Virus record (IMG/VR): IMGVR_UViG_3300022602_000024
Location: 248,001 to 312,000 of that record
Reading direction: 5' to 3' (one strand)
DNA: 64,000 nucleotides
Within the stretch, counting starts at the first letter, position 1. Every line of letters starts with the position of its first letter. Below are positions 6,438 to 63,548 of the stretch, one piece after another. The notes under the pieces were generated by a model. That model was not told where the DNA came from, ran no database searches, and saw only the letters and a program-made list of their open reading frames with translations. The translations under genes and the position numbers were made by a program.

Positions 6438-7424
6438 TTAGGTATCTGAACTGTTCTTCAGTTTAAACAGTTTCTTGGGCAAGTGCTGTTGTGCTGGTAA
6501 GTCTGTATTACTATACATAAATCCACACATGTTACAGGTGTTTTCGGGCGATTTTTGTTTCAAAAACCATTGATCTACTTCAGATTCGGTAGCATTTGTT
6601 GCCAATGATTCGTAGTCGTTGTAATAGCTGTACCAATCAGAATCTTCAGTTAACTTGTAGGTATCTAACGTATGATTTAATACTGCACGCGGAGGACATT
6701 TCCATAAACGATTGTCATATAACTGTATATAATTCTTGATATGACATACTGTATGATTATCATTTAGTGCAACAGCATTGGTGTATTCGTGAAAAGGTTT
6801 TAATGTGGGACCGTACCCGCGATAATGCGGCACAAAATGATCTTCATGTTGTTCTGTCATGTTTAACATGATCATCCGATGCCCGGCATTATTTTCCAGG
6901 CAGGTAAATTTTTTGTGTTCAGTATCCCAGGGTGTAGGAGCAACCCATTGCCATTGATAACTTGGTCTACGCAGTTGGTATTCTGCAAGAATTAAATCTT
7001 GTAAACGTTTATAGTTGTTTAATACCAGACTGGAATAAGGCTCCTCTAGTGTGTGATGTGTAACACTAACAAATGTTTGATTTTCAACAAACAGTTCTTC
7101 TATGTTGTTAAACAGTTTGTCTAGGTAGTATCCATTGGTGTTGAGCCATATAGGTAAGCGTTTACCATCGGTGGCCAAGGGCCAGTACTTGAATGCCAAT
7201 CTGAACCAATCCATGTACTTGGGGTGCATCAATGGCTCGCCACCAAACAAGTGTACTCGTGTGGGATCTATATATTGACTAAAGAACGCAATTGCAGGTT
7301 CTGCATCAGCAGGATTAACTAATCCGTTTATTTTTTGATGGTCACTAAATGTGCAACAACCTTCGCAGGCTAGTTGGCAACTGCGTATAATAACTAAATC
7401 TAGAAAATCAACTTTATATTTCAT
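6438..7424 (-). CDS. Radical SAM protein
   Basis: CQLACEGC, FGGEPLMHP, NTNG and a C-terminal Cys cluster (CNMC). Confidence 0.9.
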   Translation of the reverse strand: MKYKVDFLDLVIIRSCQLACEGCCTFSDHQKINGLVNPADAEPAIAFFSQYIDPTRVHLFGGEPLMHPKYMDWFRLAFKYWPLATDGKRLPIWLNTNGYYLDKLFNNIEELFVENQTFVSVTHHTLEEPYSSLVLNNYKRLQDLILAEYQLRRPSYQWQWVAPTPWDTEHKKFTCLENNAGHRMIMLNMTEQHEDHFVPHYRGYGPTLKPFHEYTNAVALNDNHTVCHIKNYIQLYDNRLWKCPPRAVLNHTLDTYKLTEDSDWYSYYNDYESLATNATESEVDQWFLKQKSPENTCNMCGFMYSNTDLPAQQHLPKKLFKLKNSSDT

Positions 7425-7431
7425 TAAGTAG

Positions 7432-8142
7432 TTATGCCATCAGATAATATAGTTCAACCTTTTTAAGCCACTCGTCAGACCAAAAAGCAAATTCTTCAGG
7501 CTCAACTACAAACTCTTGATACTGCGGAGTTGAGTATGTACCATCTTCTAACTGCTTGGGTTGCACACACATCATGATCACACCTGTGTCGATATTGGTA
7601 CCATGTGTGTCGTTGTGTGCAGCCGCATAAGCAGCCAACTGCATAAAGTAATCGCCAATGTTTTCACGCTTTTTGGGTTTGTTGGTTTGTTTAAAGTCAA
7701 TGATGCTGGGCTGGCCTTTCCACACACCAATGCAATCTGTGGTGCCAGCATACAGTCCACTATAGTAAACAGGAACTTCCACTCCCCAAAACTCATCGAC
7801 ATTACTCAAGCCTTCCATGATAACCTGCGCAGCCATGAACCAGCTGGGGTGTGCATAAGGGTTTGATGGCAAGGGTTTCATGTCATCTTGTAAGATGTAG
7901 GTCTCAAGATAACTGTGCATCCTTGTGCCACGATTAGCGGCTTCAGTGGTAATCTGTTGTGCACGTTCATTCCCAATGGCATTGCGCCAGTTTTGTAAGG
8001 CTTGGCGTGACTCTGCACTTTTAGTCTTGTCTAAGATAGTTGTCACACTGGGTACTTTACTGCCATCAGGAAGACAATAGTGTCGCTTGCCCTCTAAGGT
8101 TGTACGACTAAGAGGTGCATAATTGTATTGTTGTTTTATCAT
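7432..8142 (-). CDS. PD-(D/E)XK exonuclease (Cas4/MGME1-like phage exonuclease)
   Basis: PSVTTIL, RGTRMH, YAGTTD, IIDFKQT and QLAAYA motifs. Confidence 0.88.
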   Translation of the reverse strand: MIKQQYNYAPLSRTTLEGKRHYCLPDGSKVPSVTTILDKTKSAESRQALQNWRNAIGNERAQQITTEAANRGTRMHSYLETYILQDDMKPLPSNPYAHPSWFMAAQVIMEGLSNVDEFWGVEVPVYYSGLYAGTTDCIGVWKGQPSIIDFKQTNKPKKRENIGDYFMQLAAYAAAHNDTHGTNIDTGVIMMCVQPKQLEDGTYSTPQYQEFVVEPEEFAFWSDEWLKKVELYYLMA

Positions 8143-8592
8143 TTATACTTTCTTTATGTCTACGTTGGATTTGGTGAGAAATTGCACACCTGCATCACTG
8201 CGATAGTCTTCGGCATAAAATACACTACGAATACCGCTTTGGAATATGAGTTTAGCACAATCTAAACAAGGAGCATGGGTAATAAACATAGTAGCATCCA
8301 ATCCAGACTCTGTGCTTCTAGCCAGTTTAGCAATGGCATTTGTTTCAGCGTGAAGAACTTCGGGTTTGGTTTTTAACACAGTTCTGTGTATAGCACCTTC
8401 GTATCCTGAATAAAGTTCTACACTTTCATCTTCACAGTTGTTGTCCCATCCTGCAGGCATACCATTGTAGCCAATAGAGATGATTCTGTCGTCTTTGACA
8501 ATGATAGCACCAACATGCAATCTACGTGCTGAACTGAGGTCTGCAAACCTACGTGCAGTATCCATGTATGCTTGAATAAACTTTTCTTTCAA
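8143..8592 (-). CDS. dCMP deaminase
   Basis: [14 protein letters not shown] and PCLDC zinc motifs. Confidence 0.93.
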
Positions 8593-8909
8593 ACTCGAAA
8601 ACTTTCACCGCAACCACAACGGTCACGCTCATTAGGGTTGTTGAACTCAAATCCTTCGTTAAGACCGTTCTTAACATAATCTACTGTTAGACCCTGCAAG
8701 TAAACACAACTTTTTGGATCTACGAATAACTTACAGCCAGCGCAGTCAATGACTTGGTCATCGGGCGCAGGTGTATCTACGTATTCTAACACATAAGCAA
8801 GTCCGCTGCAACCTGTTGTTCTTACACCCAGACGAATTCCTTCGCCATGCCCTCTACGAGCAATAACTTGTTTAACTTTGTTAACGGCTTTTTCGGTTAA
8901 GGTAATCAT
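8589..8909 (-). CDS. iscA: Fe-S cluster assembly A-type carrier IscA
   Basis: TTGCSGLAY and C-terminal CGCGESF. Confidence 0.96.
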
Positions 8910-10228
8910 CGGTTGAAATATAGCGAAACTGGTTTACTAATATTTACGTTTGCTAGTTTATTATTAAAGTTTGATTTATCATCATCAGTCAATAAACTAT
9001 ATAGCTTGGAATTTAAAATAGAAAATTGTGTATTGGTTCTGATATCAAATTCAGCAGTGAAATTTAAATAAAAATTCCATAAATCATCATTGTCATCCCA
9101 TACATCCAATTCATTGATAGTTGCAGAAATAAATCCCTGCATTACCCTTGTTTTGTCTAGGTACCTATCAAATATTGGGTGAGCAGAACACTCTTTAAGT
9201 ATTGCTTTAAGTCCATTCCTATATCTAACTGGTAATGCTTGTATATCTAAGAAATTTGTTCTTTCAACCAAGGTAGTATTTAAAAATGTTATACTTTCAT
9301 TGGCATTAAACCAACCATACCAGTAATCTAGATATTCTTTTATGTAAAATATATTATTAAGACTAAAAACAGGATCTAAAGAAAAATCAAATTGTCTACG
9401 ACTATCAATAGATAAAAAAGATTTTTTAAATTCTAGCATTCGAGTTAGATTATTTTCAATTTTACTAAACTTAACCGGCCATCGAACATATTGATAGTTG
9501 TCGCCCACACTATCAATGCTCATGCCAAACCATATGCTTTTAAATTGCAAAAAGTAGTTTAATAACTCTTCTGACAGATTGACACTTAATGCAGTACTCA
9601 ATTTGATTCCGATACGTGGCGCCAGGCCTTGATCGATGCACCATTTTAATAATTTAAGGGCACCTGGTTGTATTAATGTTTCACCGCCTATTAAAAATAA
9701 ATGAAAAAATTTACAGTCGTTTACTTTATTGATAATATTGGTAGTGATAAAATTCCAATATTCATCTATTTCTGTTATATCTTGCGATAAGAAATCAGAG
9801 TCTGTATTGTTGGTTATCTTAGCAAAGGTAGTACTATCATACGTACTACAACTTCTACAACTCAGGCTGCAAAAGTTACTAAATTTAATTCTAAGTTCTG
9901 TGTTCCTGTTGTAATCAAATGGAAATTCGTTGGCGTTAAGTGCAATTATTGATCGGATACGCTCGGACTGCCCTCCGTGCAATTCTTCATTTTTGCACCT
10001 CCAACATGCAGCAGGAAGATATCCCTGCTCCATAGAACTTTTGATTTCCTTAAAGGGGTCATCTATATGAGAAATTGTAAATTTATTTGTATCAACATTA
10101 CAACAACAAATAATATCCATCTTTGCAGGATTACTACTATGACGTCTTACATCTGTTGTATTGTAAGGAAAAGGGCAGAAACTGGGATTATTTTTAGCCC
10201 ACTCTATTCTTTCATTGACTGTCTGCAT
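8906..10228 (-). CDS. Radical SAM protein with N-terminal twitch/SPASM-like Cys cluster
   Basis: CPFPY...CC...[12 protein letters not shown] and GGET; AT-rich; lies between iscU and iscA. Confidence 0.88.
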
Positions 10229-10605
10229 GTTTCTTTCGATAGTCTTCGACCGCGGCCTTTATGGCATCTTCGGCGAGGATACTGCAATGGATTTTAACAG
10301 GCGGCAAAGCCAACTCATTTGCAATGTCCGAGTTTTTGATTGTTGCAGCTGCATCCAATGTCTTGCCCTTGACCCACTCTGTAACAAGTGAGCTACTCGC
10401 GATAGCTGATCCGCATCCATAGGTTTTAAATCTTGCATCTGTGATAATCCCATCTTTAACTTTGATTTGGAGTCTCATTACATCTCCGTTAACCGCAAGC
10501 TGGGGCACCGACTAAGCCGGTCCCAACTTGCGCATCTCCTTTATCAAAAGTTCCCACATTTCGGGGATTTTCAAAATGATCTATTACATCTTTACTGTAA
10601 GCCAT
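10212..10605 (-). CDS. iscU: Fe-S scaffold IscU interrupted by a 7-nt insertion containing TAA (recoded gene or pseudogene)
   Basis: ATG at 10605 gives MAYSKDVIDHFENPRNVG...GAPACG then TAA (10489-10491). The gene resumes in the +1 frame as GDVMRLQIKV...YGCGSAIASSS...LPPVKIHCSILAEDA. Removing 7 nt gives a 128-aa IscU. Confidence 0.9.
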
Positions 10606-17725: not shown

Positions 17726-18694
17726 TTATGTTGGGTTAGCAAGTTCCGGGAATACAGTACGCCAGTTAGTGCCTCTGCGTTTATCGCATTTGTCTAAAAA
17801 ATCAAGTGCTTTTTGTTTGTTTTTATACCCTGAGGAAAATATACCCATAACAGGTTGTTGTCTATGTTCGATTTTATCTCCAAGTCTGTTTTCGTTAAAA
17901 TTACTAACCAGCCACAAATTTAGATTATCAAGATTTGCTTGATTTAAAATACCCACAGATGTATTAACGTTAAACATACAATTTACAGGGCTATTATCAA
18001 TGTACCATTGTAAATTATCCGTTACCTGATTCCAGATAGCAGGAAATCTTTGGTACTCAAATCTTTCTCCTATGTCATCAATGCTAAAATCAAGTTGAAC
18101 TAATTTAAATTTACTCCACAAATCTAATAATTCAGCCGATGGCAAAATAGTTCCATTGGTATTATAATCTAGTTCAACTTGTGATTTATGAGGAATTGTC
18201 TGTAAAAAAGTTATATGTTCTTTACTAAGCAATGGTTCGCCACCATTAAAATGAATTAGCCTCAGAGAGCTTGTGTCAAGAGTTTTCCAGAATTGATTTA
18301 CGGATAATTTTTTAATTGGCAAATTTAATTCTTGTTTCCAAGAACTGCTATTTTGCGGACCGCATATTACGCATCTTAGGTTACATGTGTCCCCGGTCCA
18401 ATAGTCTATTTTTGCCAACTCAACATCAGTATTGGTTAAATTTTGACTTTTATACCAGTTGTTTACATTTATTCTTCGGCTGGACCAACCAGACTCTTCT
18501 GTAGATTTACAGGCGCTACATGAACTTGGAAAATTTCCAGTTAGCCATGTTGTTCTTACTTCATTTAAAAACGAATCTTGGTGGAAATTAATGGTATCGG
18601 CTGTATTAGCAGGAGATAAACAACAAGTAGAAAAAGATTGTTGATTATTTTGATACACTATGTTTAAATTTTTAAATGCATCGTAACAAATCAT
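17726..18694 (-). CDS. Radical SAM protein with twitch-like N-terminus
   Basis: CC...CSAC, CNLRCVIC, FNGGEPL, YNTNGT, FSIDD and YQRFP. Confidence 0.9.
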   Translation of the reverse strand: MICYDAFKNLNIVYQNNQQSFSTCCLSPANTADTINFHQDSFLNEVRTTWLTGNFPSSCSACKSTEESGWSSRRINVNNWYKSQNLTNTDVELAKIDYWTGDTCNLRCVICGPQNSSSWKQELNLPIKKLSVNQFWKTLDTSSLRLIHFNGGEPLLSKEHITFLQTIPHKSQVELDYNTNGTILPSAELLDLWSKFKLVQLDFSIDDIGERFEYQRFPAIWNQVTDNLQWYIDNSPVNCMFNVNTSVGILNQANLDNLNLWLVSNFNENRLGDKIEHRQQPVMGIFSSGYKNKQKALDFLDKCDKRRGTNWRTVFPELANPT

Positions 18695-20124
18695 AATCCG
18701 CTTTTTAATCCTGCTAGCATCTGCTTGAGTTTGGTACTTTGTGCATCTCCTGTGACTCTAGGTGCACCACCGGGTTCGATATCCAAGGGATCTGGTATGC
18801 CTGCTTTGAGTGTGGGCTTTTCCCATGTAGATGTTTGTGTTTTGATTTGATTCATGATACTGGTCACTTTAGGAGGGCCATTGCCAGTATCGTTAGAATC
18901 TAACCCAGGATCAGTAATACGCATAGTTTCAATGTTGTATTCCAAATCAATCTTTTGTCCCACGCCTGTACTGTTACGACTTTTCATACACTGAATTTGA
19001 TAGCGTCCACGCTCACGCATTGCACGACTGGTAAAGATACCAAACACATTATCAGCAGTATTAATCTTACTGATACCACCCGAAATATGACTATGATCAA
19101 ATTCAGGTTCATCAACAGCACTACGATTCAACTGACTTGCAGTTACCATCAAGATGCCTAGTTCTTTGGCCAAGTTACGCAGTTCTTCTGACACATACTT
19201 GTCCTTAACAAACAAGTCATTGGGACTTACTTTGGCACTGACTGGCATCAACAAGTCCAGATAGTCTACCATCATAAAGTCAACCTTACGTCCTGTTTGT
19301 ATTTGATATTCTTTTAAGAAACTGCGAATGTCGTTGATATTGCTCTGTGCCGGTAGTGCTTTGACTTGATATGTGCCGGACTTTTTGCCCACCATCTTGA
19401 CCTTAAGTTCTGTTGTTTCAATGTCCTTGCGAATGTCTTTGGTACTCATGCCTGCCAACATGGCATCAGTTCTCAGTGCAGTCATTTCTTCACTTAACTC
19501 TAAACTGATATACACACCGTGTAAGCCTGCTTGCACCCAACTCAGTGCAATGTTCATCATCACTAGAGACTTGCCTGATCCTGATCCGCCAGCAAAGATG
19601 TTTAGTTCACCTCTACTGAATCCACCGTACAACAATCTATCCAGTTGTGGCCAACCTGTACTTACTTGCCCGCCCGAATTAAAATACTTGTTGATACGTG
19701 CCGCAGGATCTGCAAAGTAATCTGTACCTAAGTCTTTGGTTAACGATATCTGCACCGCGTCTTTGATCAATTTTTCTACAGGATCGTAGTCGCCTTTTTC
19801 TAGCAAGTCTGCTGCTTTTAAAATTGCACGTTCCAGTTCCTGCCTACGTGTAAACTGTTCAAACTCATCTGTGAACCAACCAGTGGGCAAAGCAGTAGTT
19901 TCAACTGGTTTTAATTGAACACCATTGGTTGCATTGACTTGTTCAAATGTAGGAAGTGTATTGTATTTGCTGCTGTACTCAGCAATAAACTTAGCAGTTT
20001 CTCTAAGACTGCGATCAAAGTTTTCAGGGTTGTAAATGTTTTGCACACGCACAAATTCTTGTGCGTCACTCATCATGGTTTCTAATAATAATTTTTGTAA
20101 GTCTGCGGAGTATTCTTTTGTCAT
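18691..20124 (-). CDS. DnaB-like replicative helicase (T4 gp41-like)
   Basis: Walker A GGSGSGKS, ISLELSE, MVDYLDL, TASQLNRSA and MKSR. Confidence 0.95.
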   Translation of the reverse strand: MTKEYSADLQKLLLETMMSDAQEFVRVQNIYNPENFDRSLRETAKFIAEYSSKYNTLPTFEQVNATNGVQLKPVETTALPTGWFTDEFEQFTRRQELERAILKAADLLEKGDYDPVEKLIKDAVQISLTKDLGTDYFADPAARINKYFNSGGQVSTGWPQLDRLLYGGFSRGELNIFAGGSGSGKSLVMMNIALSWVQAGLHGVYISLELSEEMTALRTDAMLAGMSTKDIRKDIETTELKVKMVGKKSGTYQVKALPAQSNINDIRSFLKEYQIQTGRKVDFMMVDYLDLLMPVSAKVSPNDLFVKDKYVSEELRNLAKELGILMVTASQLNRSAVDEPEFDHSHISGGISKINTADNVFGIFTSRAMRERGRYQIQCMKSRNSTGVGQKIDLEYNIETMRITDPGLDSNDTGNGPPKVTSIMNQIKTQTSTWEKPTLKAGIPDPLDIEPGGAPRVTGDAQSTKLKQMLAGLKSGL

Positions 20125-20753
20125 AATATTTTCGAAATTAGCTTTGTATTTTTACTTGCCCACGTATCGTATGTTGCATTAAATTGTTCTTGATTAATGT
20201 TTGATTGTAACATAGATTCTACTAGGCTACGACACTTTTTCTTATCAACTATGTCTTTTATGTCAATTCTGTTTAAATTTAATGCTTTCCACCCATTAAG
20301 ACATTTTTGCCAATCATTTCTCATTATGATTTTTACATGTTCATCTGTTAATGGTTTTATTTTTTTAATATCTTTAAATGAATGTGTCCTTAATAAAAAA
20401 TTAAATAATGTTTCGTTTGATGGTGTAATACGTTTGTCTATAAAAATTTCTGTTGTGACATCTAAGTAGTTGCCATCATCAATATAATAAAATTTACATT
20501 CAGGAAATAGATCAACAGTTTCTTTATAGCAATAATGTGTGTTAACTATGTTATTAAAATTTGAATACTCAAAATTTTTAAATTTTGTTAAATAAAAATT
20601 TTTACAAGCGGTTTTAAAATTGGCACTTGGGTGAGTTAATACCATTCCGTTATTGTCTATATCAACTTTATTAGTTTGAGATAACAGGACCACTAGAAAA
20701 TCTCCTGCTGCGCCACCATTAAACGCTATACAAATTTCGGGATTTGAATTCAT
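20121..20753 (-). CDS. Hypothetical protein (P-loop/sulfotransferase-like N-terminus)
   Basis: IAFNGGAAGDFL; very AT-rich gene. Confidence 0.55.
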   Translation of the reverse strand: MNSNPEICIAFNGGAAGDFLVVLLSQTNKVDIDNNGMVLTHPSANFKTACKNFYLTKFKNFEYSNFNNIVNTHYCYKETVDLFPECKFYYIDDGNYLDVTTEIFIDKRITPSNETLFNFLLRTHSFKDIKKIKPLTDEHVKIIMRNDWQKCLNGWKALNLNRIDIKDIVDKKKCRSLVESMLQSNINQEQFNATYDTWASKNTKLISKIL

Positions 20754-22328: not shown

Positions 22329-22367
22329 CTTAGTAGTATACACTACTTTTTGGATTAAATCAACAGG

Positions 22368-43725: not shown

Positions 43726-45643
<1,918 letters not shown>

Positions 45644-46499: not shown

Positions 46500-46681
46500 T
46501 ATCTACTGCCTTCTTGTCCTGGTTCATTGCTGTGTGAGCACTCTAATTCGTGATTGGTTGCTCGGGGGCAACGTTTATTGCCGCAATCCGGGCATACTAT
46601 AAACGTGTAACTGGTTACTGGAATTCCGTTTTCGTCCTCAATTTGACTCAAGCACCGATAACACCAACACTTGTATTTCAT
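46496..46681 (-). CDS. Small Cys-rich zinc-binding protein
   Basis: CWCYRC...CPDCGNKRCPRATNH..C. Confidence 0.75.
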   Translation of the reverse strand: MKYKCWCYRCLSQIEDENGIPVTSYTFIVCPDCGNKRCPRATNHELECSHSNEPGQEGSRY

Positions 46682-49501: not shown

Positions 49502-50526
49502 CGTTTATTCTCCAATGTCCATTGTACCATTCCGGCAATACGCTCACTCAATTTGATCTTAGGTTCCCATCCCAACTGCTTTAGCAAGCCACCATCTAAG
49601 GCATAACGCAAGTCATGTCCGGGACGGCTACCATGGAAGTCCACCATTTCATAAACAAGTTCTTTACCTACACCAGCAGCAATCATTTGTGCCAAGGTCA
49701 AGTTATCAATTTCTTCTGTACCCACTAAGTTAAACTTGGGGCAATGTGCCCATCCGTAATCACCTGTGTGTTTGTAGTTTTGTGGCAATGTTTGTAATAT
49801 AAACATCAGTCCTTCTGCTACATCTCGAGCATGAATATACATACGTGTGCCAGCTGCAGTCTTGGTAGGATCAGCGTGGATGAAAATCTTTTCTCCGTCA
49901 CGTACACGTTGGATACACATGGGAATAAACTTCTCTGGATGCTGACGCTCCCCAAATACGTTCATGGTATGTGTTACAACAATGGGCATCTTGTAAGTGT
50001 TTTCGTAAGCAACGCAGAATTCTTCTGCGGCTGCTTTACTTGCACTGTAGGGATTGGTACTGTTATAACGATCATACTCTTTATAACTTACTCCCGGAGG
50101 TGCAACACCAAAGATCTCGTCTGTGCTAAAGTACACAAAACGCTCTAGGTCGGGCAAGTTTTTACGTGCATAGTCCAACATATTGACTGTGCCCACTGTG
50201 TTGTCTAACACAAACTCCATGGGGTATGTAATACTACGATCCACGTGGCTACTGGCAGCCAAGTGCAACACAATATCAATCGGACCAATGTCGGCTACAA
50301 TTTGACTGTTTAGTTCTGCTTTGATATCGTGAAAGATAATGCGTAAACGTTCACTGACCAATTTGGGATCGTGATCTTTCAACATGTCGTGCAGTCTGTT
50401 TAGATTACCGCTGATGTCCAAACGGTCTAGTGTGACCACATTCCAATCAGTATCTCGTAAAATTTTATCTATAACGTGGTGGGCAATGAATCCCGCACCA
50501 CCGGTGATTAATACGTTCTTTGACAT
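49486..50526 (-). CDS. rfbB: dTDP-glucose 4,6-dehydratase
   Basis: ITGGAGFI, HLAASSHVDRSI, STDE, PYSASKA and RPGHDLRYA. Confidence 0.93.
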   Translation of the reverse strand: MSKNVLITGGAGFIAHHVIDKILRDTDWNVVTLDRLDISGNLNRLHDMLKDHDPKLVSERLRIIFHDIKAELNSQIVADIGPIDIVLHLAASSHVDRSITYPMEFVLDNTVGTVNMLDYARKNLPDLERFVYFSTDEIFGVAPPGVSYKEYDRYNSTNPYSASKAAAEEFCVAYENTYKMPIVVTHTMNVFGERQHPEKFIPMCIQRVRDGEKIFIHADPTKTAAGTRMYIHARDVAEGLMFILQTLPQNYKHTGDYGWAHCPKFNLVGTEEIDNLTLAQMIAAGVGKELVYEMVDFHGSRPGHDLRYALDGGLLKQLGWEPKIKLSERIAGMVQWTLENKRWLTK

Positions 50527-50542
50527 AGTGTTCCTGTTTGAA

Positions 50543-51418
50543 TTAGCTAGTATACGGATATTTTGGCAACAAGTCAACGGCTTTGGCTTCCGGATTGCTC
50601 AAAATAAATTCGGCATACTTTTCTTGATTGTCTACAATGGTTTTAGGGAAGTACGAGTCCAATTCCACAATGCTATAACGATCGTTGGGATTGCCACGAT
50701 TCCATTCTTTGCGTTCGGCAATCGACTTTTCTACATCAATCTGCTCAATAAACTCGGGACGATTAACTTCAGCATGTGCAAAGTTCTTGGCCTTGTTACG
50801 CAACCATTCGTTGTTGCCCATATAACCAAAGTGCCAACCACCATGCTCAATCACTTCACATCCATCGTTCTTGAACTGATAAGGCGCTGACATGAATTGG
50901 AAACGTATGCGTCTGAATTCTGTAGGGGTAATGTCTTTCAATAACGCCCGACGCCCGGCCATGGCCCAAATGTCATATTCGCCTGGAGTGGCTCTCATGT
51001 AATTGAACTTGAAGTTGTGCAGGCTCATACGTAGTGCAAATAGGCTTTGATCGCTAGCAACCATGTACTGTAGTGCAGCCGGACGAATGATTTCATCCAA
51101 GTCACTGATCAAGATCAAATCATCTAGGGCAGCATCAGCAATGCCTTGGCGAATTTGATCTCTGTGGTGTGCTTCGTTAACCCAGGAATCTGGATCATTG
51201 GGCATGTCATCAACTTGGATATGGATAATCTTATCTGCCCACTGTGCGTAGCGGGCCTTATTATCTTCGTAGTAGTAAGGCTTTGGATTACCTTGATGTG
51301 TCATATTGGCTTCAACCAAAACAAAGTGGTCGACAAAATCATATAATTCTGTTAATCTTAGTTCAAGTAGATCCAACTCATTGTAGAAGGGGAAACAATC
51401 GTAGATTTTTATTTTCAT
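50543..51418 (-). CDS. Glycosyltransferase family 17 (beta-1,4-GlcNAc-transferase-like)
   Basis: YDCFPFYNELDLLELR, VLVEA..TH.G.PK, ISDLDEI and GGWHF. Confidence 0.88.
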   Translation of the reverse strand: MKIKIYDCFPFYNELDLLELRLTELYDFVDHFVLVEANMTHQGNPKPYYYEDNKARYAQWADKIIHIQVDDMPNDPDSWVNEAHHRDQIRQGIADAALDDLILISDLDEIIRPAALQYMVASDQSLFALRMSLHNFKFNYMRATPGEYDIWAMAGRRALLKDITPTEFRRIRFQFMSAPYQFKNDGCEVIEHGGWHFGYMGNNEWLRNKAKNFAHAEVNRPEFIEQIDVEKSIAERKEWNRGNPNDRYSIVELDSYFPKTIVDNQEKYAEFILSNPEAKAVDLLPKYPYTS

Positions 51419-51473
51419 AGTGATATTTATTTGCTAATAAATACTGTACATTAATTTTCAAAGGCGGTCAACC

Positions 51474-52157
51474 ATGTATGCTGTTGTAAGCATGTGCACT
51501 TCAAACCTAGATGACCTGGGTAACTTAACAAACAAATACAAACTCGAATACTGTGAACGCCATGGTTATGAGTTCTTCAATATCGGCGACGAAGAAATTG
51601 GCCCAGTAGACGGCCCATGGAGTTTTTCAATGGACTGGCATAAACCACGTTATGTCAGCAACCTATTTGCTCAACGCCCAGATATTGAATGGGCACTAGT
51701 AACCGAAGCCGACGCCACCATTACCAACTTGACCATTCCCATGAGTGATCGGGTAGACAATGACTTCCATGTGGTTGTTCCAGTGGATAGACTCAACATC
51801 AATTCCGGCAACATGTTGGTACGCAATAGCCCAGAAGGTCGTGCTTACTTGCAAGCCATGTTGGCAGACGGAGACAAGTACCTTACAAATACCACCAACA
51901 ATCCCATATTTGGATTGCAGTTATGGATGGTAGATACCATTGATCAACATGGTGATATCACAAAGATTGTACCACAAAAGCACATGAACAGTTACGAACT
52001 GGAAATTTACGACTATTGCGATGTCAGCACCGACATCATGGGCAATAGCGGAGTATGGACCCGGGGCGACTGGATTGTGCACTGGCCTGGTATCAGACAT
52101 GAAGTTAGACTTCAACGTGCTGCATCATTAGAAACAGAAGGAAGGATAACAAGATAA
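51474..52157 (+). CDS. Glycosyltransferase family 34-like
   Basis: YCERHGY, WHK, EADA, INSG.MLVRN and GDWIVHWPG. Confidence 0.8.
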   Translation: MYAVVSMCTSNLDDLGNLTNKYKLEYCERHGYEFFNIGDEEIGPVDGPWSFSMDWHKPRYVSNLFAQRPDIEWALVTEADATITNLTIPMSDRVDNDFHVVVPVDRLNINSGNMLVRNSPEGRAYLQAMLADGDKYLTNTTNNPIFGLQLWMVDTIDQHGDITKIVPQKHMNSYELEIYDYCDVSTDIMGNSGVWTRGDWIVHWPGIRHEVRLQRAASLETEGRITR

Positions 52158-52708
52158 TGGCTATACCATTTGGAGAAGATGACACAATCAAAATAGATCG
52201 GTGTCATGCTGATTTATTAAGAGGCTTGATAGTTGCTGGAAAACCCCGGACTGTATTGGAATTGGGCATCGGCGGTGGACAAGCAACGGATGCAATGCTA
52301 GACGGATTAGCGTATAATCAACAAGCATACGAATACACACTGGTTGATAACTGGCTAGACTTCAACAGTACAATGCCTGCCCGAGTTGGCGAGTTATACA
52401 GCAGTAGAGTCAACATTGTTACATCCGGTGAAAAAGAATTTGTGTTCAGCACCAACAAGAAGTTTGATTTGATAATGAGTGATGCAGATCACCACCATAC
52501 ACAAGAATGGTTTGAGTATGTATACGAGAATCTGCTGAATGATGATGGTATACTTTGTTATCATGATGTTATGTTAACTTCACAGTTTCCAAATTTAATG
52601 GAAATATATAACAAGTGCAAAGAACTTAACCTAAGATACAAACTGTTTGACAAAGATAGTTTATCAACCGAAATGTGCTTTCGTGGCTTTTTAGTAATTT
52701 TTAAATAA
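52157..52708 (+). CDS. Class I SAM-dependent methyltransferase (Methyltransf_24-like)
   Basis: VLELGIGGG, FDLIMSDADH and GILCYHD. Confidence 0.85.
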   Translation: MAIPFGEDDTIKIDRCHADLLRGLIVAGKPRTVLELGIGGGQATDAMLDGLAYNQQAYEYTLVDNWLDFNSTMPARVGELYSSRVNIVTSGEKEFVFSTNKKFDLIMSDADHHHTQEWFEYVYENLLNDDGILCYHDVMLTSQFPNLMEIYNKCKELNLRYKLFDKDSLSTEMCFRGFLVIFK

Positions 52709-52715
52709 GGCAGCA

Positions 52716-53366
52716 ATGACAAGTATTCAAGAAACATTTACTGACATATATGTTAATCGACGTTGGGATGAGCCCAACAAACCCAACGAATCGGCCAGTG
52801 GCAACGGATCAACACTGGACTTCACTAGAAATTTACGTAAAGAACTGCCAAAGTTGTTTGACATGTTTGCTATACAATCAGTATTTGACGCACCGTGTGG
52901 TGATTTAAATTGGATGAGTCAAGTGTTATCAGAGTGCCCAGACATTGACTATATCGGCGGAGACATTGTTGCGCCGTTGATCGATCAACTCACTGAACAG
53001 TATGCCGAATATGCCAACATGGATTTTGTTAACATCAATATTATCAATGACGAGCTACCTGCTGCAGATTTAATGATCTGCAGAGACTGTTTGTTCCATC
53101 TAAGCGAAGCAGATGTCAAAACATTCTTTAGAAACTTTGTCTCTTCCGATATTGCGGCTTTGTTAGTTACATCCGATATACTGCCAGAACCCAACAGAGA
53201 CATTGAGACTGGCGACTATCGTCACCTGAATCTATTCACTGCACCTTACAACTTTACCGCCGATTACATATACGAAATCAGCGATTGGCCTTATCCTACT
53301 CCCGCTACTAGAAAAATGTTTATGTGGAGTAGAGAACAAATTGAAGAAATAGTGAGCAAATTTTAA
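52716..53366 (+). CDS. Class I SAM-dependent methyltransferase
   Basis: SGNGS, VFDAPCGD, YIGGDIV and DLMICRDCLFHL. Confidence 0.85.
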   Translation: MTSIQETFTDIYVNRRWDEPNKPNESASGNGSTLDFTRNLRKELPKLFDMFAIQSVFDAPCGDLNWMSQVLSECPDIDYIGGDIVAPLIDQLTEQYAEYANMDFVNINIINDELPAADLMICRDCLFHLSEADVKTFFRNFVSSDIAALLVTSDILPEPNRDIETGDYRHLNLFTAPYNFTADYIYEISDWPYPTPATRKMFMWSREQIEEIVSKF

Positions 53367-53367
53367 T

Positions 53368-54309
53368 ATGAATATTTTTATTACTGGCATGGCAGGTATG
53401 ATCGGGTTTCATACTGCCAAACATTTAACTGCATTGGGACACACAGTAACAGGCGTAGACAACTTCAATGACTATTACGAAGTCAGTTTAAAAAGAGAAC
53501 GTGCACGTATCCTGCAAGACGAGCATGGAGTCGCTGTAACAGAAGCAGATATCATTACACTAGATTACGACTCTGCATTGTCAGGTGTAGATGTAATTTT
53601 ACATTTATCTGCTTATGCCAACCCACGTCACAGTTTGGAATATCCGCAACTGTACATTGACAACAACATTACTGGCACACAAAGATTGATTGAAGGTGCA
53701 GAGCGCATGGGTATACACAATGTGGTATATGCATCTAGTAGTTGTGTGATGCATGGACAAGAATTGCCTTGGAAGGAATCCGACAATCCTGGACATCAAA
53801 ACAATCCATATGGATGGACCAAACGCAGTAATGAATGTCAATTCATATACAGTAAGATCAAAAACACAATGGGTTTAAGATTCTTTACAGTATATGGACC
53901 TTATGGTCGTCCAGACATGGCCTTGTTTAACTTTACTAAAAACATTTTAAACAATGAACCAATCGATTTGTTTAATTACGGAGATATGAAGCGAGACTTT
54001 ACCTTTGTAGACGATATTGTCCAGGGTATTACCTTGGTTATAGACAACTGTGTCAAGCAAGACCATGTGCACGAAATCTACAACATTGGTTATGGTCAAC
54101 AAGTCAATTTGATGGATTTTGTTAGCGAGATTGAACGTTGCTTGGAGCGGAAGGCAGTGACCAACTTGTTGCCCAAGCACCCAGCAGATGTACCAGCTAC
54201 TTGGGCCGATACAACTAAGATTCAGGGTTTGGGTTATCGGGCAACTACCAGTATTACTGACGGTGTTAGCAAATTCATTGACTGGTATCGCAGTTATTAC
54301 CGGATTTAA
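53368..54309 (+). CDS. NAD-dependent epimerase (UDP-glucuronate 4-epimerase-like)
   Basis: ITGMAGMIG, YASSS, YGWTK, LRFFTVYGPYGRPDMA and RDFTFVDD. Confidence 0.92.
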   Translation: MNIFITGMAGMIGFHTAKHLTALGHTVTGVDNFNDYYEVSLKRERARILQDEHGVAVTEADIITLDYDSALSGVDVILHLSAYANPRHSLEYPQLYIDNNITGTQRLIEGAERMGIHNVVYASSSCVMHGQELPWKESDNPGHQNNPYGWTKRSNECQFIYSKIKNTMGLRFFTVYGPYGRPDMALFNFTKNILNNEPIDLFNYGDMKRDFTFVDDIVQGITLVIDNCVKQDHVHEIYNIGYGQQVNLMDFVSEIERCLERKAVTNLLPKHPADVPATWADTTKIQGLGYRATTSITDGVSKFIDWYRSYYRI

Positions 54310-54983
54310 TAATTAATATAACGGCTATTATGGTTAACGCCATATAGTCGTTCTTTAGTTGCGATATTGATAAACATAATATCAACTTGAACCAACACAT
54401 GATCCCCGGTATGGATTTCTAATAAATCGCTGGGGATAAATCGTTGACTGGCCATGTATTCCAAATACTCTTGTATATTTGGTGCACCTATATTGTATTT
54501 GCCTATAGGGCATTCTAGGTAAACTAAATCCACTGCAGGCAGTATTGTTTCTGCTCCACGTAAGATATCCAACTCAGATCCCTGTGTGTCTATCTTTATA
54601 AAGTTAGGTGCAGGCATTTCGCACTCGTTAACAATAGACTCTAGAGTTCTTGCTGGAACTGTTATTGGCGTTTTACCGTCATAGATTGGTGTATTTTCTT
54701 TGTAGTAACTGTCGCCAGTGCCGCCGTAGCCGTCAGTGGTATAATACTCAACTGAGTCTCTGCCAGGGTTACTTAATATTCCGATATAGTAAGGCAAGTT
54801 AGTTCTTTGTAGTGCAGGTTCGTGTGCAACATTGCCCTCAAACAAGTAGAAGTAACTGTTTCTTAACACGCCTGCTTTCATTGGCACGGCCCAATTGCCT
54901 TGATTGGCTCCTATGTCAAATACTGTTTCTATGCGTAACCCGTCTTGCTGAATTTGTTTGAGATAATTTTCTAATGTGTTCAC
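54306..54983 (-). CDS. FkbM-family methyltransferase
   Basis: FDIGANQG and IKIDTQGSELDILRG. Confidence 0.9.
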   Translation of the reverse strand: MNTLENYLKQIQQDGLRIETVFDIGANQGNWAVPMKAGVLRNSYFYLFEGNVAHEPALQRTNLPYYIGILSNPGRDSVEYYTTDGYGGTGDSYYKENTPIYDGKTPITVPARTLESIVNECEMPAPNFIKIDTQGSELDILRGAETILPAVDLVYLECPIGKYNIGAPNIQEYLEYMASQRFIPSDLLEIHTGDHVLVQVDIMFINIATKERLYGVNHNSRYINY

Positions 54984-55936
54984 AAAAATACCGTTTTGAA
55001 TTTATTCATAACTTGATCTGGGGCAAACTGTTCAACCCGCTTGCGCCAATCTTCTGTTGTTGCAAGATCACGTATATGTAATAATTTATCTCGAATTGTT
55101 TCCTGAGTATAAATTAGTCCCGAGTCTTTTAACATCAGTGCATGATTTTGATCGTTGCCACCAGCCCATGACAATACTGGTTTATTCATGTATAAGGATT
55201 CAGCAACTGCCAGTCCAAAACTTTCACCATTGCTACGTGCGTGCAAGGTAGCATCACAGGTGTTAAAGAAGTTGGCTTTGCGTTGAGTATCATGAAACTC
55301 GGGAATGTATCGAATGTTGGCATGTTCGCCCCAAGGTTGTGTTCCAGCAAATACAAACACAAAATCGTCACGTTGAGTAACGATATCTGCAATGGCCTGT
55401 TTAACAAACATCAAGTCAAAGGTCAAAAAGCCACCTATGCGTCCTATTACTGTTTGACCGGGACGGATGTTGAGTTCTTCACGTAGATCACCTGTTGGCT
55501 CAGGCAGTGTAACAATGTGTGGCACATAAGGGCGGTTATCATTATACTGAGCGTTCATTGCCGACGCTAACCACTCACTGATATAAGCATATTCACGATA
55601 CTCGGGCTTTACCTCATGACGTTGCCACACTTCGTGCATAACCACCGGGCAATTGTCAGGAATGAATCTATTGCCGTTGTACAAGAGATCTACATGTTCT
55701 CTGTCGATGATGTCTTGAAGTTCTTGGATATCATCATAAGCAATAACTGTAAACTCCTCTTGTAAGTTAGCAAGAACTTCAGGTTCTGTACCTACATCAA
55801 GAGTCCAAGGCCTAGCACCATCATAACAAATTATGCTTTCATTGCCCAGTATCGTTTGATTGTATCGTGCATAGTCCGTGATGGCAACTGTGCTACCACG
55901 ATAGTTCAATATATCAGTTTGGAATAAGATTTTCAT
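54980..55936 (-). CDS. GT-B glycosyltransferase (GT4-like)
   Basis: IGRIGG and CDATLHARSNGESFGLAVAE. Confidence 0.82.
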   Translation of the reverse strand: MKILFQTDILNYRGSTVAITDYARYNQTILGNESIICYDGARPWTLDVGTEPEVLANLQEEFTVIAYDDIQELQDIIDREHVDLLYNGNRFIPDNCPVVMHEVWQRHEVKPEYREYAYISEWLASAMNAQYNDNRPYVPHIVTLPEPTGDLREELNIRPGQTVIGRIGGFLTFDLMFVKQAIADIVTQRDDFVFVFAGTQPWGEHANIRYIPEFHDTQRKANFFNTCDATLHARSNGESFGLAVAESLYMNKPVLSWAGGNDQNHALMLKDSGLIYTQETIRDKLLHIRDLATTEDWRKRVEQFAPDQVMNKFKTVFL

Positions 55937-56148: not shown

Positions 56149-56895
56149 TCAAACGTTTGTGATACCAAAACGCCCATAATCAAAAGGCACAATTTGGTTT
56201 TCGTACTGATTGTAGTTTAACATAAGGTCTTTGGCAATATCTTTGAACATGGTGTGATACTCATCACTCATATGGCCAACACGATCCATTTGATATGGCG
56301 TTACACCAATCAAATCACCTTCGTGTGCGCTAATAGTTTCAAATGCAAAGTCTAACAATACACCTCTAGCGAAATGTCTCTTGGCCATTTCTCGTGATAG
56401 CTCTGTATTAGGTAAAAATATAAATCGAGTTTGGGGAAATTGGGCAGGCAAATCTAAACACCATTTGACCATTTGTTCGTAGTTGAACTGGGCCTGTGCT
56501 TGATTGTGCAGGACTTCGTAGTAAAGTCCCAGTGCTTGTATGCACTTTTCTGCTTCGCCGGGCTGAAATAAATGCCGGTCTTCTTCGTAGATAGCTCTGT
56601 TTTCGGCGTGTGCTGATAAGATCTTTTGCCATTTGGGATCATCTATGTACAAACGATTGTCCCAGGTAAAAGTAAAGAAAGCATAATCAAACTCCACGCC
56701 GCGAGCCTGTGCTTCTTTCCATTGTGTGATAGCGTAGTATTGATTGCTACCACCCAACCCTGATGTGATTACAGGAGCATCGAGTTCTTCTAATAGGCGT
56801 TGTGCCCAGATTTTCTTTTCTGGGGGCACTCGATACGTTGGCCAACGATGCCAAACTATGTCAATATAACTGTCACCAAATAGTCCAATTTTCAT
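56149..56895 (-). CDS. SGNH-hydrolase-like protein
   Basis: IGLFGDSY, GLGGSN and C-terminal GH. Confidence 0.65.
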   Translation of the reverse strand: MKIGLFGDSYIDIVWHRWPTYRVPPEKKIWAQRLLEELDAPVITSGLGGSNQYYAITQWKEAQARGVEFDYAFFTFTWDNRLYIDDPKWQKILSAHAENRAIYEEDRHLFQPGEAEKCIQALGLYYEVLHNQAQAQFNYEQMVKWCLDLPAQFPQTRFIFLPNTELSREMAKRHFARGVLLDFAFETISAHEGDLIGVTPYQMDRVGHMSDEYHTMFKDIAKDLMLNYNQYENQIVPFDYGRFGITNV

Positions 56896-58676: not shown

Positions 58677-58683
58677 ACTAACC

Positions 58684-61454: not shown

Positions 61455-62397
61455 TGACAGTGACTCGTAGTTGATCTGCCGAAAAACTATTTCTACGATT
61501 TCGGAGCATGACCAAAAATTCTTTACCTGATACTACTCGTCCAACAGGCATGCCGCAAATTGCCGGTGTGTATGTTACACCACCTTTGGCTAACCAATTT
61601 TGAAAATCTGTTGTTTTAACAATGTCTGATCTTCTTAATGGCGAAATATCAATCGCTAGTTTTGCTGAGTACCCTAACATATGGGTTATGTCCCATGCTC
61701 CTGCATCATCATCTTCGTAATAAGCAATTATATAATCTTTGCCTAGTATGCTGGTTCCTACCCATACATCATAATCGCCACTATCATCCCAATATGGATA
61801 ATCTTCTTGCTCTATATTAAAAAAACATTCTTTAATAAGTCTGGTGCCATCGTTGATGTAGGTGTTGGCAATAATTTCAACTTGTTGAGCCAATTCTGAA
61901 ATATTATTGGTTTTAAGATCTGTTTTAACATACAGTTCTGTTTTATGTACTATATCATTGATTTGATCTATCAGATACAAAAATCTATCCTGATCCGACT
62001 CCTTTAACTGAAATGTCAAAGGCACTCTATCATTCCACACATACGGCGGACCATCATAATATGAACGATGTGCAGTAGTAAATGCTCGATGCAAGTCATT
62101 CAGATAATGCTGGGTTTCTTTGGTTCTTTTTTGCATCAGATCTACATCAACTTGATATAAAAAGTCGGTACCCATTGCATTTAATTCATTGATAGTATCA
62201 GTGAGACGTTGTATTTGCGTGTCGACAAATCCCTGCGGAGGTGAAAGCATGATTCCGCCATAAGTCTTTGTGTAAAATATTGTCGGATAGTCCAAAAACA
62301 TTTCTGTAATTTTCGAAATAAATTTGTCTGTAAAAGAATTTTTTACAACTTCGATTTGAGAAACACCCAATGGAGATTCTATTGTGATTGTTGACAT
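61447..62397 (-). CDS. Hypothetical protein, distant paralog of 37854..38723
   Basis: LNDLHRAFT, INDIVHKTE and LGK...DDD. Confidence 0.7.
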   Translation of the reverse strand: MSTITIESPLGVSQIEVVKNSFTDKFISKITEMFLDYPTIFYTKTYGGIMLSPPQGFVDTQIQRLTDTINELNAMGTDFLYQVDVDLMQKRTKETQHYLNDLHRAFTTAHRSYYDGPPYVWNDRVPLTFQLKESDQDRFLYLIDQINDIVHKTELYVKTDLKTNNISELAQQVEIIANTYINDGTRLIKECFFNIEQEDYPYWDDSGDYDVWVGTSILGKDYIIAYYEDDDAGAWDITHMLGYSAKLAIDISPLRRSDIVKTTDFQNWLAKGGVTYTPAICGMPVGRVVSGKEFLVMLRNRRNSFSADQLRVTVNE

Positions 62398-62426
62398 GTT
62401 CGTATTTACTCCTATAAATACCCTAT

Positions 62427-63548
62427 ATGAACAATTATTGCCCTGACTTATTCAACACTATCTTTATACAAAAAGTCAATGAATCAGAGTCCGAGATTGG
62501 ACATTGTTGTGTTAGCAAGTTGAGTGACCCAGTATCCACTATTGATTTTCAAAGTGATTTCTTAGCTACCAATCGACAACATTTTTTATCAACAGGCAAT
62601 CTCCCGCCTGCTTGTGTTTACTGCACCACTGCTGAATCCAAAGGGGAAATTTCAAGACGCACTAAACGGTCAAGACCTTATGTAGAAAACAATAACTATC
62701 CAACTGAAGTAGTGGTAGAACATTTAGATTACAATTGCGACAATATATGTAATTTGAAATGTATAATGTGTAGCGGATACTACAGCAGTGCCTGGAGAGA
62801 AGATGAAGTAGCACTAGGTTTCAGAATAGATTATCGTACTAAACCTACCAAACACAACACAATGATATACGATGCTGATGTGAGTAAACTCAAAAGCATT
62901 TATTTCAACGGAGGCGAACCCTTAATGACTCGGGATCATATAAATGTGCTGAATCATGCGTTGTCTAATAGTCAAGAACCACAACATATTCGGATTAGCT
63001 ATAGCAGCAACGGCACCTTTCCGATGACTGACGAGATGGCAGATTTGTGGAAACAGTTCGAAGCAGTTTACATCAACTTCAGCATTGACGCCACAGAAAA
63101 AGAATTTGAGTACATACGGTTTCCTGCAATATGGGCTGACGTTGAAAAAAATATTGATACTTTCCGCTTGCCAAATTTGGTAACAAAAATTACTGCTACC
63201 GTAGGAGTACACAATATATTGTACTTTGACAAATTGTACCATTGGGCAGCTAAACGCAACATAGAAATATATGTACAAGATACCAATGGTAGATCACAAC
63301 TTGCAATACAAAACTTTCCCAGGGCTGGCAAAGATCGTTTGATTGCTTATCTTAATAAATTACCAGAGTCTGGCAGTAAACAATCGTTGTTGAATCTTGC
63401 ACACAACATCAATAACGACGGGCATGCACGATGGATCGAGTATCTTAACAAACTAGACCGTATGCGAGGCAACAACTGGAGAAATAGTCTAAGTAGACTG
63501 AATGAAATCAACAGGTCATGGATGTATGGAGTAAGGGGTGAGATTTGA
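62427..63548 (+). CDS. Radical SAM protein with twitch-like N-terminus
   Basis: HCC, CVYC, CNLKCIMC, FNGGEPL, FSIDA and YIRFP; TATAAATA promoter at 62413-62420. Confidence 0.92.
   Translation: MNNYCPDLFNTIFIQKVNESESEIGHCCVSKLSDPVSTIDFQSDFLATNRQHFLSTGNLPPACVYCTTAESKGEISRRTKRSRPYVENNNYPTEVVVEHLDYNCDNICNLKCIMCSGYYSSAWREDEVALGFRIDYRTKPTKHNTMIYDADVSKLKSIYFNGGEPLMTRDHINVLNHALSNSQEPQHIRISYSSNGTFPMTDEMADLWKQFEAVYINFSIDATEKEFEYIRFPAIWADVEKNIDTFRLPNLVTKITATVGVHNILYFDKLYHWAAKRNIEIYVQDTNGRSQLAIQNFPRAGKDRLIAYLNKLPESGSKQSLLNLAHNINNDGHARWIEYLNKLDRMRGNNWRNSLSRLNEINRSWMYGVRGEI

Follow-up and report, generated by a model that had tools for sequence, protein, structure and literature searches.

Radical SAM (S-adenosylmethionine) genes are, to our knowledge, common auxiliary genes in environmental phages, and the substrate is known for almost none of them. 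What does a phage do with about 6% of its genome devoted to such genes, and with an iron-sulfur (Fe-S) scaffold of its own? The question was raised by a window of 64,000 nucleotides (nt), i.e., bases 248001 to 312000 of the IMG/VR virus record IMGVR_UViG_3300022602_000024 (354,429 bp; guanine-plus-cytosine [GC] content, 40.5%). Within this window, a reading made from the letters alone (here called the sequence-only reading) had picked out nine dispersed genes: five radical SAM genes, three SGNH-like genes, and one P-loop-like gene. Our analysis of these genes, of the whole genome, and of its relatives yielded a named radical SAM family (NF033640), a conserved operon that unites it with SGNH-like genes, and defined exchange slots, and it pointed to a glycan as the candidate product.

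A radical SAM family with an N-terminal cysteine module

Radical SAM genes were called with Pfam PF04055 (cut-off, 29.5 bits), and genes of the N-terminal-twitch type (N-twitch genes) were called with NCBIfam NF033640 (cut-off, 170 bits). All five window genes (rSAM1 to rSAM5; Table 1) proved to be radical SAM genes, as the sequence-only reading had proposed: their PF04055 scores ranged from 24.5 to 53.9 bits, and the CxxxCxxC motif is present in each, including rSAM1 and rSAM2 (24.5 bits), which scored under the cut-off. The accompanying proposal that four of them carry an N-terminal twitch-like module was borne out as well. Near end-to-end matches to NF033640 were obtained for rSAM2, rSAM3, rSAM4, and rSAM5 (168.4, 197.6, 249.4, and 211.4 bits, respectively), the first of which lies just below the cut-off. 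The remaining gene, rSAM1, falls outside the family (16 bits). Because its CxxxCxxC motif is located at the N-terminus (residues 16 to 23) and additional cysteines are clustered at its C-terminus, we regard rSAM1 as a different type.

The window contains only part of the expansion. Across the genome (label G000), the Pfam Radical_SAM model matched at 17 places that together occupy 21.0 kb, or 5.9% of the genome. Twelve of the genes are N-twitch genes, 11 of which scored above the NF033640 cut-off, and they constitute the largest paralog family of the genome: five stand in tandem at G000 66949-73509, three start at 102817, 123688, and 243496, and four are those of the window. By contrast, matches of the same family above the cut-off were found in only 3 of the 401 Pseudomonadota genomes sampled. 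Further radical SAM genes in the genome include one with an N-terminal SPASM domain that lies outside NF033640 and two that encode proteins of about 500 amino acids (aa). The latter pair (G000 231367-232923 and 323664-325145) is AT-rich and has no counterpart in the complete related genome described below; at least one of the two weakly matched a B12-binding domain, and they may be cobalamin-dependent methylases.

The 12 N-twitch paralogs show pairwise identities of only 16 to 34%. Nevertheless, four N-terminal cysteines (C8, C27, C69, and C72 in rSAM4 numbering), the CxxxCxxC motif, and a GGE motif are invariant in all 12, and no internal stop codon was found. The N-terminal cysteine module is predicted to be a twitch (i.e., a half-SPASM) domain with a putative auxiliary [4Fe-4S] site. 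With motifs retained and reading frames intact at such low identities, the copies are old and constrained. Pseudogene-like decay, which the sequence-only reading had named as a possible refutation, was ruled out by the same features. Recent tandem duplication was likewise ruled out, given the low identities between paralogs and the pairing of each gene of the tandem array with its own ortholog in the complete relative.

Twitch-type radical SAM enzymes that act on sugars exist. BtrN, HygY, and SpeY are twitch radical SAM enzymes acting on carbohydrates, and they have one auxiliary [4Fe-4S] site. Their twitch is C-terminal, whereas that of the lake phage enzymes is N-terminal, and a shared sugar chemistry is a proposal. 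Since none of the three was among the PDB sequence matches at an E value of ≤0.01, we treat them as an analogy and not as evidence of family membership.

Exchange slots and a conserved core

The source of the window is a jumbo phage of lakes and freshwater that belongs to a very abundant clade. The genome has an estimated CheckV completeness of 98%, and metagenomes of lakes and freshwater from 22 studies contain the stretch. Relatives of its helicase occur on at least 597 IMG/VR contigs (the best 80, which were retained, are at least 73% identical), and IscU is present on at least 594 related viral contigs. Our comparison set consisted of 160 related loci, a complete relative of 354,098 bp (G001), and lake metagenome contigs. 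Helicase protein identity was 93 to 97% for the closest relatives (including L006 to L009) and 73 to 97% for the wider set of loci.

Two backbone stretches underlie the region. One has the order primase, helicase, a 257-aa gene (16181-16954), and a DUF6267 gene in the related loci. The other comprises a 240-aa gene (12277-12999), IscU, IscA, a PD-(D/E)XK nuclease gene, an Mtd-like gene, and the gene for ribonucleotide reductase (RNR). For six of the nine flagged genes, the slot is one whose conserved flanking genes adjoin each other in most relatives. The primase gene is directly beside the helicase gene in 49 of 72 related loci, a direct IscU/IscA overlap occurs in 49 of 64, and IscA is beside the nuclease gene in 30 of 49. 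The nuclease gene is beside the Mtd-like gene in 61 of 63, and both inserts found at that junction are rSAM1-like; rSAM1 itself lies between the nuclease gene and an Mtd_N/pectate-lyase-like gene. In the window, rSAM2 shares 17 nt with the end of IscU, and the start of IscA is coupled to it via ATGA. Directly after the helicase gene, an N-twitch gene comes first in 26 of 78 loci. The complete relative has orthologs for none of the nine flagged genes, and the flanks are syntenic; for instance, the orthologs of the genes flanking SGNH2 (B_254773-255351 and B_255348-256121) abut or overlap there, and rSAM5 has only a 26% identical paralog match. In the window, a tRNA-Cys(GCA) gene (63527-63604, minus strand) overlaps the final 22 nt of rSAM5.

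At the nucleotide level, the borders of rSAM3 and of the two-gene cassette formed by SGNH1 and the P-loop-like gene (the sulfotransferase-fold gene of Table 1) coincide, exactly or to within about 10 nt, with breaks in homology to the closest relatives. For the cassette, homology to L006 and L007 ends at 21294 and picks up again with the helicase start codon at 20124; the gap that separates primase from helicase measures 27 nt in L006, versus 1,169 nt in the window. For rSAM3, homology to L007, L008, and L009 ends at about 18700 to 18710 and restarts at 17729 to 17731. Contigs identical to the cassette were present in two lake runs (X1 and X2), one of which (X2) also contained a cassette-less contig in which 30 other letters link 20124 to 21297 (side 67). 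A contig joint that omits rSAM3 (17730 to 18716) was found in both runs and is weakly anchored (side 25). The summed depth of lake contigs was about 800 to 950 at window positions 18840-19207 and about 35 at 17552-17735, compared with about 6 elsewhere. Positions 17655-17731 are 100% identical to L008, and the two high-depth stretches look like sequence shared with many abundant relatives.

Where slots are filled in relatives, the main cargo consists of N-twitch genes, radical SAM genes of a third type (about 298 aa; 12 of 34 open reading frames [ORFs] classed as "other"), SGNH-like genes (n = 14), P-loop-like genes, and dCMP deaminase genes. A quick gene tree, for which only SH-aLRT (Shimodaira-Hasegawa-like approximate likelihood ratio test) support was computed, placed the plus-strand genes of the after-helicase slot in one clade (support, 99), within a deep clade that includes rSAM3 and rSAM5. 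From this single deep clade, we conclude that the slot is home to one lineage that has diverged and been lost in places, and not to genes that arrived at random. The nearest kin of rSAM2 (clade support, 100) lie after IscA in three relatives (L092, L104, and L126), i.e., on the other side of that gene, from which we infer local movement.

Base composition varied among the flagged genes. Their GC percentiles among 416 genes were 0 for the P-loop-like gene and SGNH2, 1 for SGNH1, 2 for rSAM2, 4 for rSAM3, and 10 for rSAM4; the claim of the sequence-only reading that the genes are AT-rich was thus accurate for these six, but not for rSAM1, rSAM5, and SGNH3 (percentiles 25, 26, and 61, respectively). 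Of 25 genes of the expanded families, 9 fall in the lowest GC decile, which is an enrichment (P = 2.8e-4), and the conserved five-gene array has a normal GC content. The reported ATGA coupling was found at five junctions (SGNH1/P-loop-like gene, P-loop-like gene/helicase, helicase/rSAM3, rSAM2/IscA, and the gene upstream of SGNH2/SGNH2). The accessory copies are one- or two-gene cassettes, often AT-rich, that occupy fixed slots; close relatives have them, lack them, or carry something else in their place.

Other members of the same families are stable. Outside the window, the five tandem radical SAM genes are followed by two unknown genes and three SGNH-like genes (G000 74840-76939), and the array is neighbored by tail-fibre-like genes (Collar and Peptidase_G2). 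Orthologs of all five radical SAM genes (53 to 78% identity) and of the SGNH-like genes (31 to 42%) exist in the complete relative, which has eight N-twitch genes in total. In the window, rSAM4 follows a terminator-like hairpin downstream of GroEL and precedes a GGACT gene. It has 91 homologs, at least 4 of which are on contigs of 170 to 337 kb, and its ortholog P0021 (45% identical) on a 333-kb contig (L086) is found in the order glycan cluster, three unknown genes, rSAM4, GGACT, AAA, UvsW. The array and rSAM4 are stable and are not exchanged. The "rapidly exchanged toolkit" of the sequence-only reading therefore describes the accessory copies, with their slots empty in most relatives, their border breaks, and the cassette-less contig, but not the array or rSAM4. 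A placement between core genes was confirmed for rSAM1, rSAM2, rSAM3, the SGNH1 cassette, and SGNH2. GroEL, which had also been counted as core, is accessory, because it is absent from the complete relative; its protein shares 61% identity with the GroEL of Vibrio phage 2.275.O (349 kb).

Table 1. Positions of the flagged genes and of other features in the window
Feature	Position	Strand	Description
rSAM1	6438..7424	-	PF04055 28.1 bits and Fer4_12; without N-terminal twitch; NCBIfam matches weak only
IscA-type Fe-S carrier	8589..8909	-	PF01521, 78.5 bits
rSAM2	8906..10228	-	N-twitch; GC 31.9%; between IscU and IscA
IscU Fe-S scaffold	10212..10508	-	PF01592, 127.8 bits
rSAM3	17726..18694	-	N-twitch; GC 33.3%; ATGA-coupled to helicase stop; first slot after helicase
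DnaB-like replicative helicase	18691..20124	-	PF03796; backbone gene
Sulfotransferase-fold gene ("P-loop-like")	20121..20753	-	GC 27.2%, genome minimum; second half of two-gene cassette
SGNH1	20750..21289	-	GC 31.3%; first half of primase/helicase cassette; linked by iterated profile search
DnaG-like primase	21282..22343	-	Toprim_2 and DNAG_N; backbone gene
SGNH2	32590..33522	-	GC 29.5%; SGNH-like domain at about residues 115-310, with extra N-terminal region
GGACT/AIG2 (gamma-glutamyl cyclotransferase-like) gene	42059..42514	-	PF06094; conserved rSAM4 partner by synteny
rSAM4	42546..43676	-	N-twitch; strongest NF033640 match in window; Pfam SPASM at residues 8-49
GroEL and GroES	43726..45643	-	Cpn10 match; accessory in clade
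Glycan cluster	46678..55936		GT9-like, sugar C-methyltransferase, NDP-sugar 4,6-dehydratase, GT17, GT34, GT1
SGNH3	56149..56895	-	GDS motif; edge of glycan cluster; GC 41.9%; family profile 94.6 bits
rSAM5	62427..63548	+	N-twitch; tree sister of after-helicase clade; 34% identical to rSAM3

The SGNH-like and sulfotransferase-fold genes

None of the three SGNH-like window genes had a direct match in Pfam, NCBIfam, or PHROGs. Iterated hidden Markov models (HMMs) built on the genome and the 160 related loci linked them with five more paralogs, giving eight in total, and three of the five are those in tandem after the radical SAM array. One paralog (G000 75635-76273) matched DUF6071 (PF19547) at 42.9 bits, against a cut-off of 27, and weakly matched Lipase_GDSL_2; the window genes are tied to DUF6071 only via the iterated HMMs and Atlas neighbors. 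When a profile of 49 family sequences was compared with the PDB, all 42 matches were GDSL/SGNH proteins (best match, 4rw0; E = 6e-8). The block I Ser, block II Gly, block III Asn, and block V His were found in SGNH1, SGNH2, and SGNH3. Within the family, the Ser is conserved in 42 of 46 and the His in 42 of 49 sequences, and the Asp of block V (DxxH) is not conserved. In an Atlas feature search, SGNH2 gave weak leads with scores of 0.83 to 0.85, under the 0.9 line; the lead clusters are viral, and 15 to 18% of their members carry Lipase_GDSL or DUF6071. The AlphaFold2 (AF2) model of SGNH3 had a mean predicted local distance difference test (pLDDT) score of 73, and its best Foldseek matches (E = 1.5e-4) were GDSL proteins, among them the acetylxylan esterase Axe2 and TesA; its Atlas structure matches include viral DUF6071 clusters. 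At the level of profiles and catalytic blocks, these results identify the three window genes as true paralogs within one viral GDSL/SGNH family related to DUF6071, in agreement with the sequence-only reading. The family shares its profile matches and block residues with GDSL hydrolases (e.g., Axe2 and TesA), and one paralog scores above the DUF6071 cut-off. It differs from GDSL hydrolases in the lack of a Pfam match of its own for the window genes and in the unconserved DxxH Asp, and the predicted activity is hydrolysis or acyl transfer.

The P-loop assignment of the gene at 20121-20753 did not survive. The gene lacks a Walker A motif (GxxxxGK[ST]); the corresponding loop reads NGGAAGDF, and no Lys-Ser/Thr is found there across 13 homologs. 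Scans of Pfam, NCBIfam, and PHROGs returned nothing. A confident AF2 model (pLDDT, 92.6) instead predicts the fold of a PAPS (3'-phosphoadenosine 5'-phosphosulfate) sulfotransferase. The top 50 of 50 PDB fold matches are PAPS sulfotransferases (Z scores of 10.5 to 9.3 over about 170 of 210 residues; root mean square deviation, 3.4 to 4.2), and Foldseek gave an E value of 4e-3. The overall fold is thus alike, whereas the phage loop lacks the Lys/Thr phosphate-binding signature of these enzymes. The gene and SGNH1 co-occur in four related loci (L045, L059, L063, and L084).

A candidate glycan product and its alternatives

The substrates listed by the sequence-only reading (virion, glycan, DNA, or peptide) fared unequally: glycan gained indirect support, and DNA and peptide gained little. 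We consider it about an even bet that the enzymes jointly build or tailor a glycan (sugar polymer). SGNH enzymes and sulfotransferases are typical of glycan tailoring. We favor this reading because of the glycan cluster in the window, a bacterial O-antigen locus in which the radical SAM genes occur, and the neighborhoods of other bacterial homologs, and also because the two expanded families are united in one conserved operon near tail-fibre-like genes. Besides the genes of Table 1, the window cluster encodes two SAM methyltransferases, an NDP-sugar (nucleoside diphosphate sugar) epimerase/reductase, and an FkbM methyltransferase; positions 50543-58335 have no counterpart in the complete relative. 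On the 333-kb contig, a GT17/GT34/epimerase/FkbM cluster lies three unannotated genes upstream of the rSAM4 ortholog.

The bacterial locus (G108:C19) has the order WbsX glycosyltransferase, methyltransferase, TylF-like O-methyltransferase, four tandem N-twitch genes, RmlD, and RmlC. The last of the four is fused to Wzt, the O-antigen exporter ATPase, in one 854-aa frame (L202 8579-11143; ABC_tran, Wzt_C, SPASM, and Radical_SAM) that includes a carbohydrate-binding domain. This locus offers a tractable system for reaction discovery. Among 10 bacterial neighborhoods, 4 have clear glycan genes, 2 have looser ones (L206 and the P0150 contig), and 4 have none; in G179, L207, and L211, glycan genes lie a few genes from the homologs. 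As there was no matched random-gene control, these counts are suggestive only. In two bacterial genes (G108:C19 4283-5902 and G179:C134 10522-12165), an additional in-frame sequence of about 480 nt interrupts the match.

If the glycan reading is correct, the N-twitch enzymes would act through the 5'-deoxyadenosyl radical, with electrons conducted by the auxiliary cluster, on the sugars of a polymer or on a lipid- or nucleotide-linked precursor; candidate reactions are oxidation, epimerisation, deoxygenation, and C-C or C-methyl chemistry. SGNH-like proteins would put on or take off O-acyl groups, the sulfotransferase-like protein would attach a charged group, and methyltransferases would cap the product. 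The product could be a glycan that decorates surface proteins of the virion (tail fibres and proteins with a lectin fold), or it could be a polysaccharide of the host envelope in modified form, and the swap of a cassette would alter the decoration. Radical chemistry would in that case join polysaccharide tailoring, and the system would show how large phages diversify their surfaces.

Several findings weigh against a glycan product. No paper on NF033640 was found, and no member of the family has a demonstrated substrate. The four bacterial neighborhoods without glycan genes comprise one nif cluster and three mixed or isolated contexts, and the closest solved structure by sequence (8VPO) is a peptide-modifying enzyme. 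The sulfotransferase-fold gene has no PAPS-binding loop recognisable by eye and is only about 10% identical to the matched structures, and the SGNH3 model fits SGNH structures loosely (template modeling [TM] score of about 0.3). The unannotated genes beside the array (G000 64089-66956 and 73789-74862) have no family matches, with empty PDB sequence and PHROGs searches; DxD-like motifs in three of them, seen by eye only, give a tentative glycosyltransferase-like reading. No RNA run containing the region was found.

In one alternative, the N-twitch enzymes are SPASM-like maturases that crosslink, epimerise, or otherwise change residues of phage peptides or virion proteins (e.g., tail fibres), and the SGNH-like, sulfotransferase-like, and GGACT proteins provide further protein tailoring. 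In its favor, radical SAM/SPASM maturases are the best solved-structure matches of the family profile (8VPO, a peptide cyclopropyl synthase, E = 9.6e-13; anaerobic sulfatase-maturating enzyme [anSME], 4k37), and many of the weak NCBIfam matches are peptide maturases. Additionally, the top fold match of the sulfotransferase-like model is a tyrosylprotein sulfotransferase (Z = 10.5), rSAM4 has the GGACT gene as its conserved partner, and tail-fibre-like genes border the five-gene array. However, the matches cover the radical SAM core only (positions 105 to 330 for 8VPO) and leave the N-terminal module uncovered, and the domain order is reversed in the phage enzymes. No RiPP (ribosomally made, post-translationally modified peptide) recognition element domain turned up in the Pfam and NCBIfam scans, which included no dedicated search, and no cysteine-rich or repeated small ORF or other obvious precursor was seen adjoining the genes, although these were not searched systematically. 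The sulfotransferase matches within a Z score of 1 of the best include carbohydrate and small-molecule enzymes, and the bacterial homologs are found in O-antigen or glycan loci, one of them fused to Wzt. On balance, peptide or protein modification seems to us unlikely. A still different target, DNA or nucleotides, would explain the replication-gene neighborhood, with altered bases or nucleotide pools evading host restriction. Several copies do adjoin the genes for RNR, dCMP deaminase, primase, and helicase, and the phage also encodes a ThyA-family protein. In Vibrio phage KVP40, the distant homologs have a QueC-like gene nearby. Weak QueE and viperin-like matches were obtained as well. We nevertheless judge hypermodification very unlikely: the replication-side positions are permissive junctions, empty in most relatives and filled with varied cargo, which weakens the argument from neighborhood, and the conserved array stands beside tail-fibre-like and SGNH-like genes and not replication genes. 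Moreover, GT1, GT9-like, GT17, and GT34 are polysaccharide or glycoprotein types, the bacterial context is O-antigen, and the QueE and viperin scores are far below the cut-offs.

The genes might also share no pathway at all and be independent "morons" (for anti-defence or host takeover) that pile up at insertion-tolerant junctions. Cassettes that are AT-rich relative to the genome, their absence from the complete relative, their patchy presence across relatives, and the heterogeneous bacterial contexts of the homologs would all fit. But the same few families fill different slots in many relatives, and this recurrence weakens the idea of unrelated genes. Furthermore, the two main families are united in one conserved operon, the catalytic motifs are retained in all copies at 16 to 34% identity, and the after-helicase slot holds one deep clade; unrelated cargo is in our view distinctly unlikely. 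The glycan reading, by comparison, could be extended to a broader proposal that we hold to be doubtful: the N-twitch enzymes might be a new class of radical glycan-tailoring enzymes, with which an abundant clade of jumbo phages of lakes and oceans varies the chemistry of a glycan at the surface of the virion or of the infected cell through a stable five-enzyme core and swappable radical SAM, SGNH, and sulfotransferase-like cassettes, in a manner like O-antigen serotype switching, on phage-encoded Fe-S scaffolds.

Each N-twitch enzyme would need at least two [4Fe-4S] clusters; the phage IscU and IscA would meet this high demand, and cysteine desulfurase and reductants would come from the host. 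A second IscA copy is located at G000 175404-175730. A fully self-sufficient support of radical SAM enzymes was ruled out, as the genome lacks IscS, flavodoxin, methylthioadenosine/S-adenosylhomocysteine (MTA/SAH) nucleosidase, SAM synthetase, and a RuBisCO-like gene. The 333-kb relative (an ENA contig) has a Pfam RuBisCO_large match adjoining its glycan cluster (L086 1-1162), which may encode a RuBisCO-like protein for the salvage of sulfur or 5'-deoxyadenosine. Marine T4-like viral genomes were reported to carry IscU or an A-type carrier alongside as many as 12 radical SAM genes, and the scaffold was interpreted as supplying virus-encoded Fe-S enzymes (Nishimura et al. 2017, PMC5332604). The pairing of Fe-S scaffold and radical SAM genes in phages has thus been known since 2017, and what is new here is the family, the conserved operon, and the cassette slots. 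The phage of that report is marine and 183 kb long, with no family assignment, substrate, or account of gene turnover; the lake phage, at 354 kb, has 17 radical SAM genes, a named subfamily, a five-gene array, an SGNH co-expansion, and mapped slots.

A megablast search with the region of the window's 2,180-aa gene found no match among cultured phages, and the only radical SAM matches there were distant ones (about 20% identity) in KVP40-like Vibrio phages. A single-protein scan of a genome collection returned only two short contigs of metagenome-assembled genomes (MAGs), which are probably binned phage. One MAG labelled uncultured Polynucleobacter (G006) contains 10 N-twitch matches (contigs C12, C44, C79, C86, C94, and C193), one of which is 75% identical to an array gene; these probably derive from a phage of the same clade binned into the MAG and give a weak hint of Polynucleobacter as the host. 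Proteins likely to serve in host recognition are encoded in the window at 5230-6405, 22368-24558, 24560-31102, and 57589-58335: an Mtd_N (major tropism determinant) N-terminal domain is found in two proteins, one of them of 2,180 aa, and four proteins have the lectin fold Laminin_G_3. They are possible targets of glycosylation.

Perfect TTGACA-N16-18-TATAAT sites occur three times on the minus strand (42521-42549, 45670-45699, and 59016-59044), versus 0.11 expected. They lie upstream of the GGACT gene (with an N17 spacer), GroES, and a small ORF, which suggests that these units may be transcribed with host sigma-70. The T4 late-promoter motif TATAAATA was not enriched (3 observed versus 5.8 expected). 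A homing-endonuclease gene with HNH and NUMOD3 domains (35576-36394, plus strand) adjoins the UvsW helicase gene on the strand opposite to almost all of its neighbors, and a tRNA cluster at 57231-58752 comprises Ser, Phe, Arg, Leu, Thr, and Gln tRNA genes and one weak additional Rfam match.

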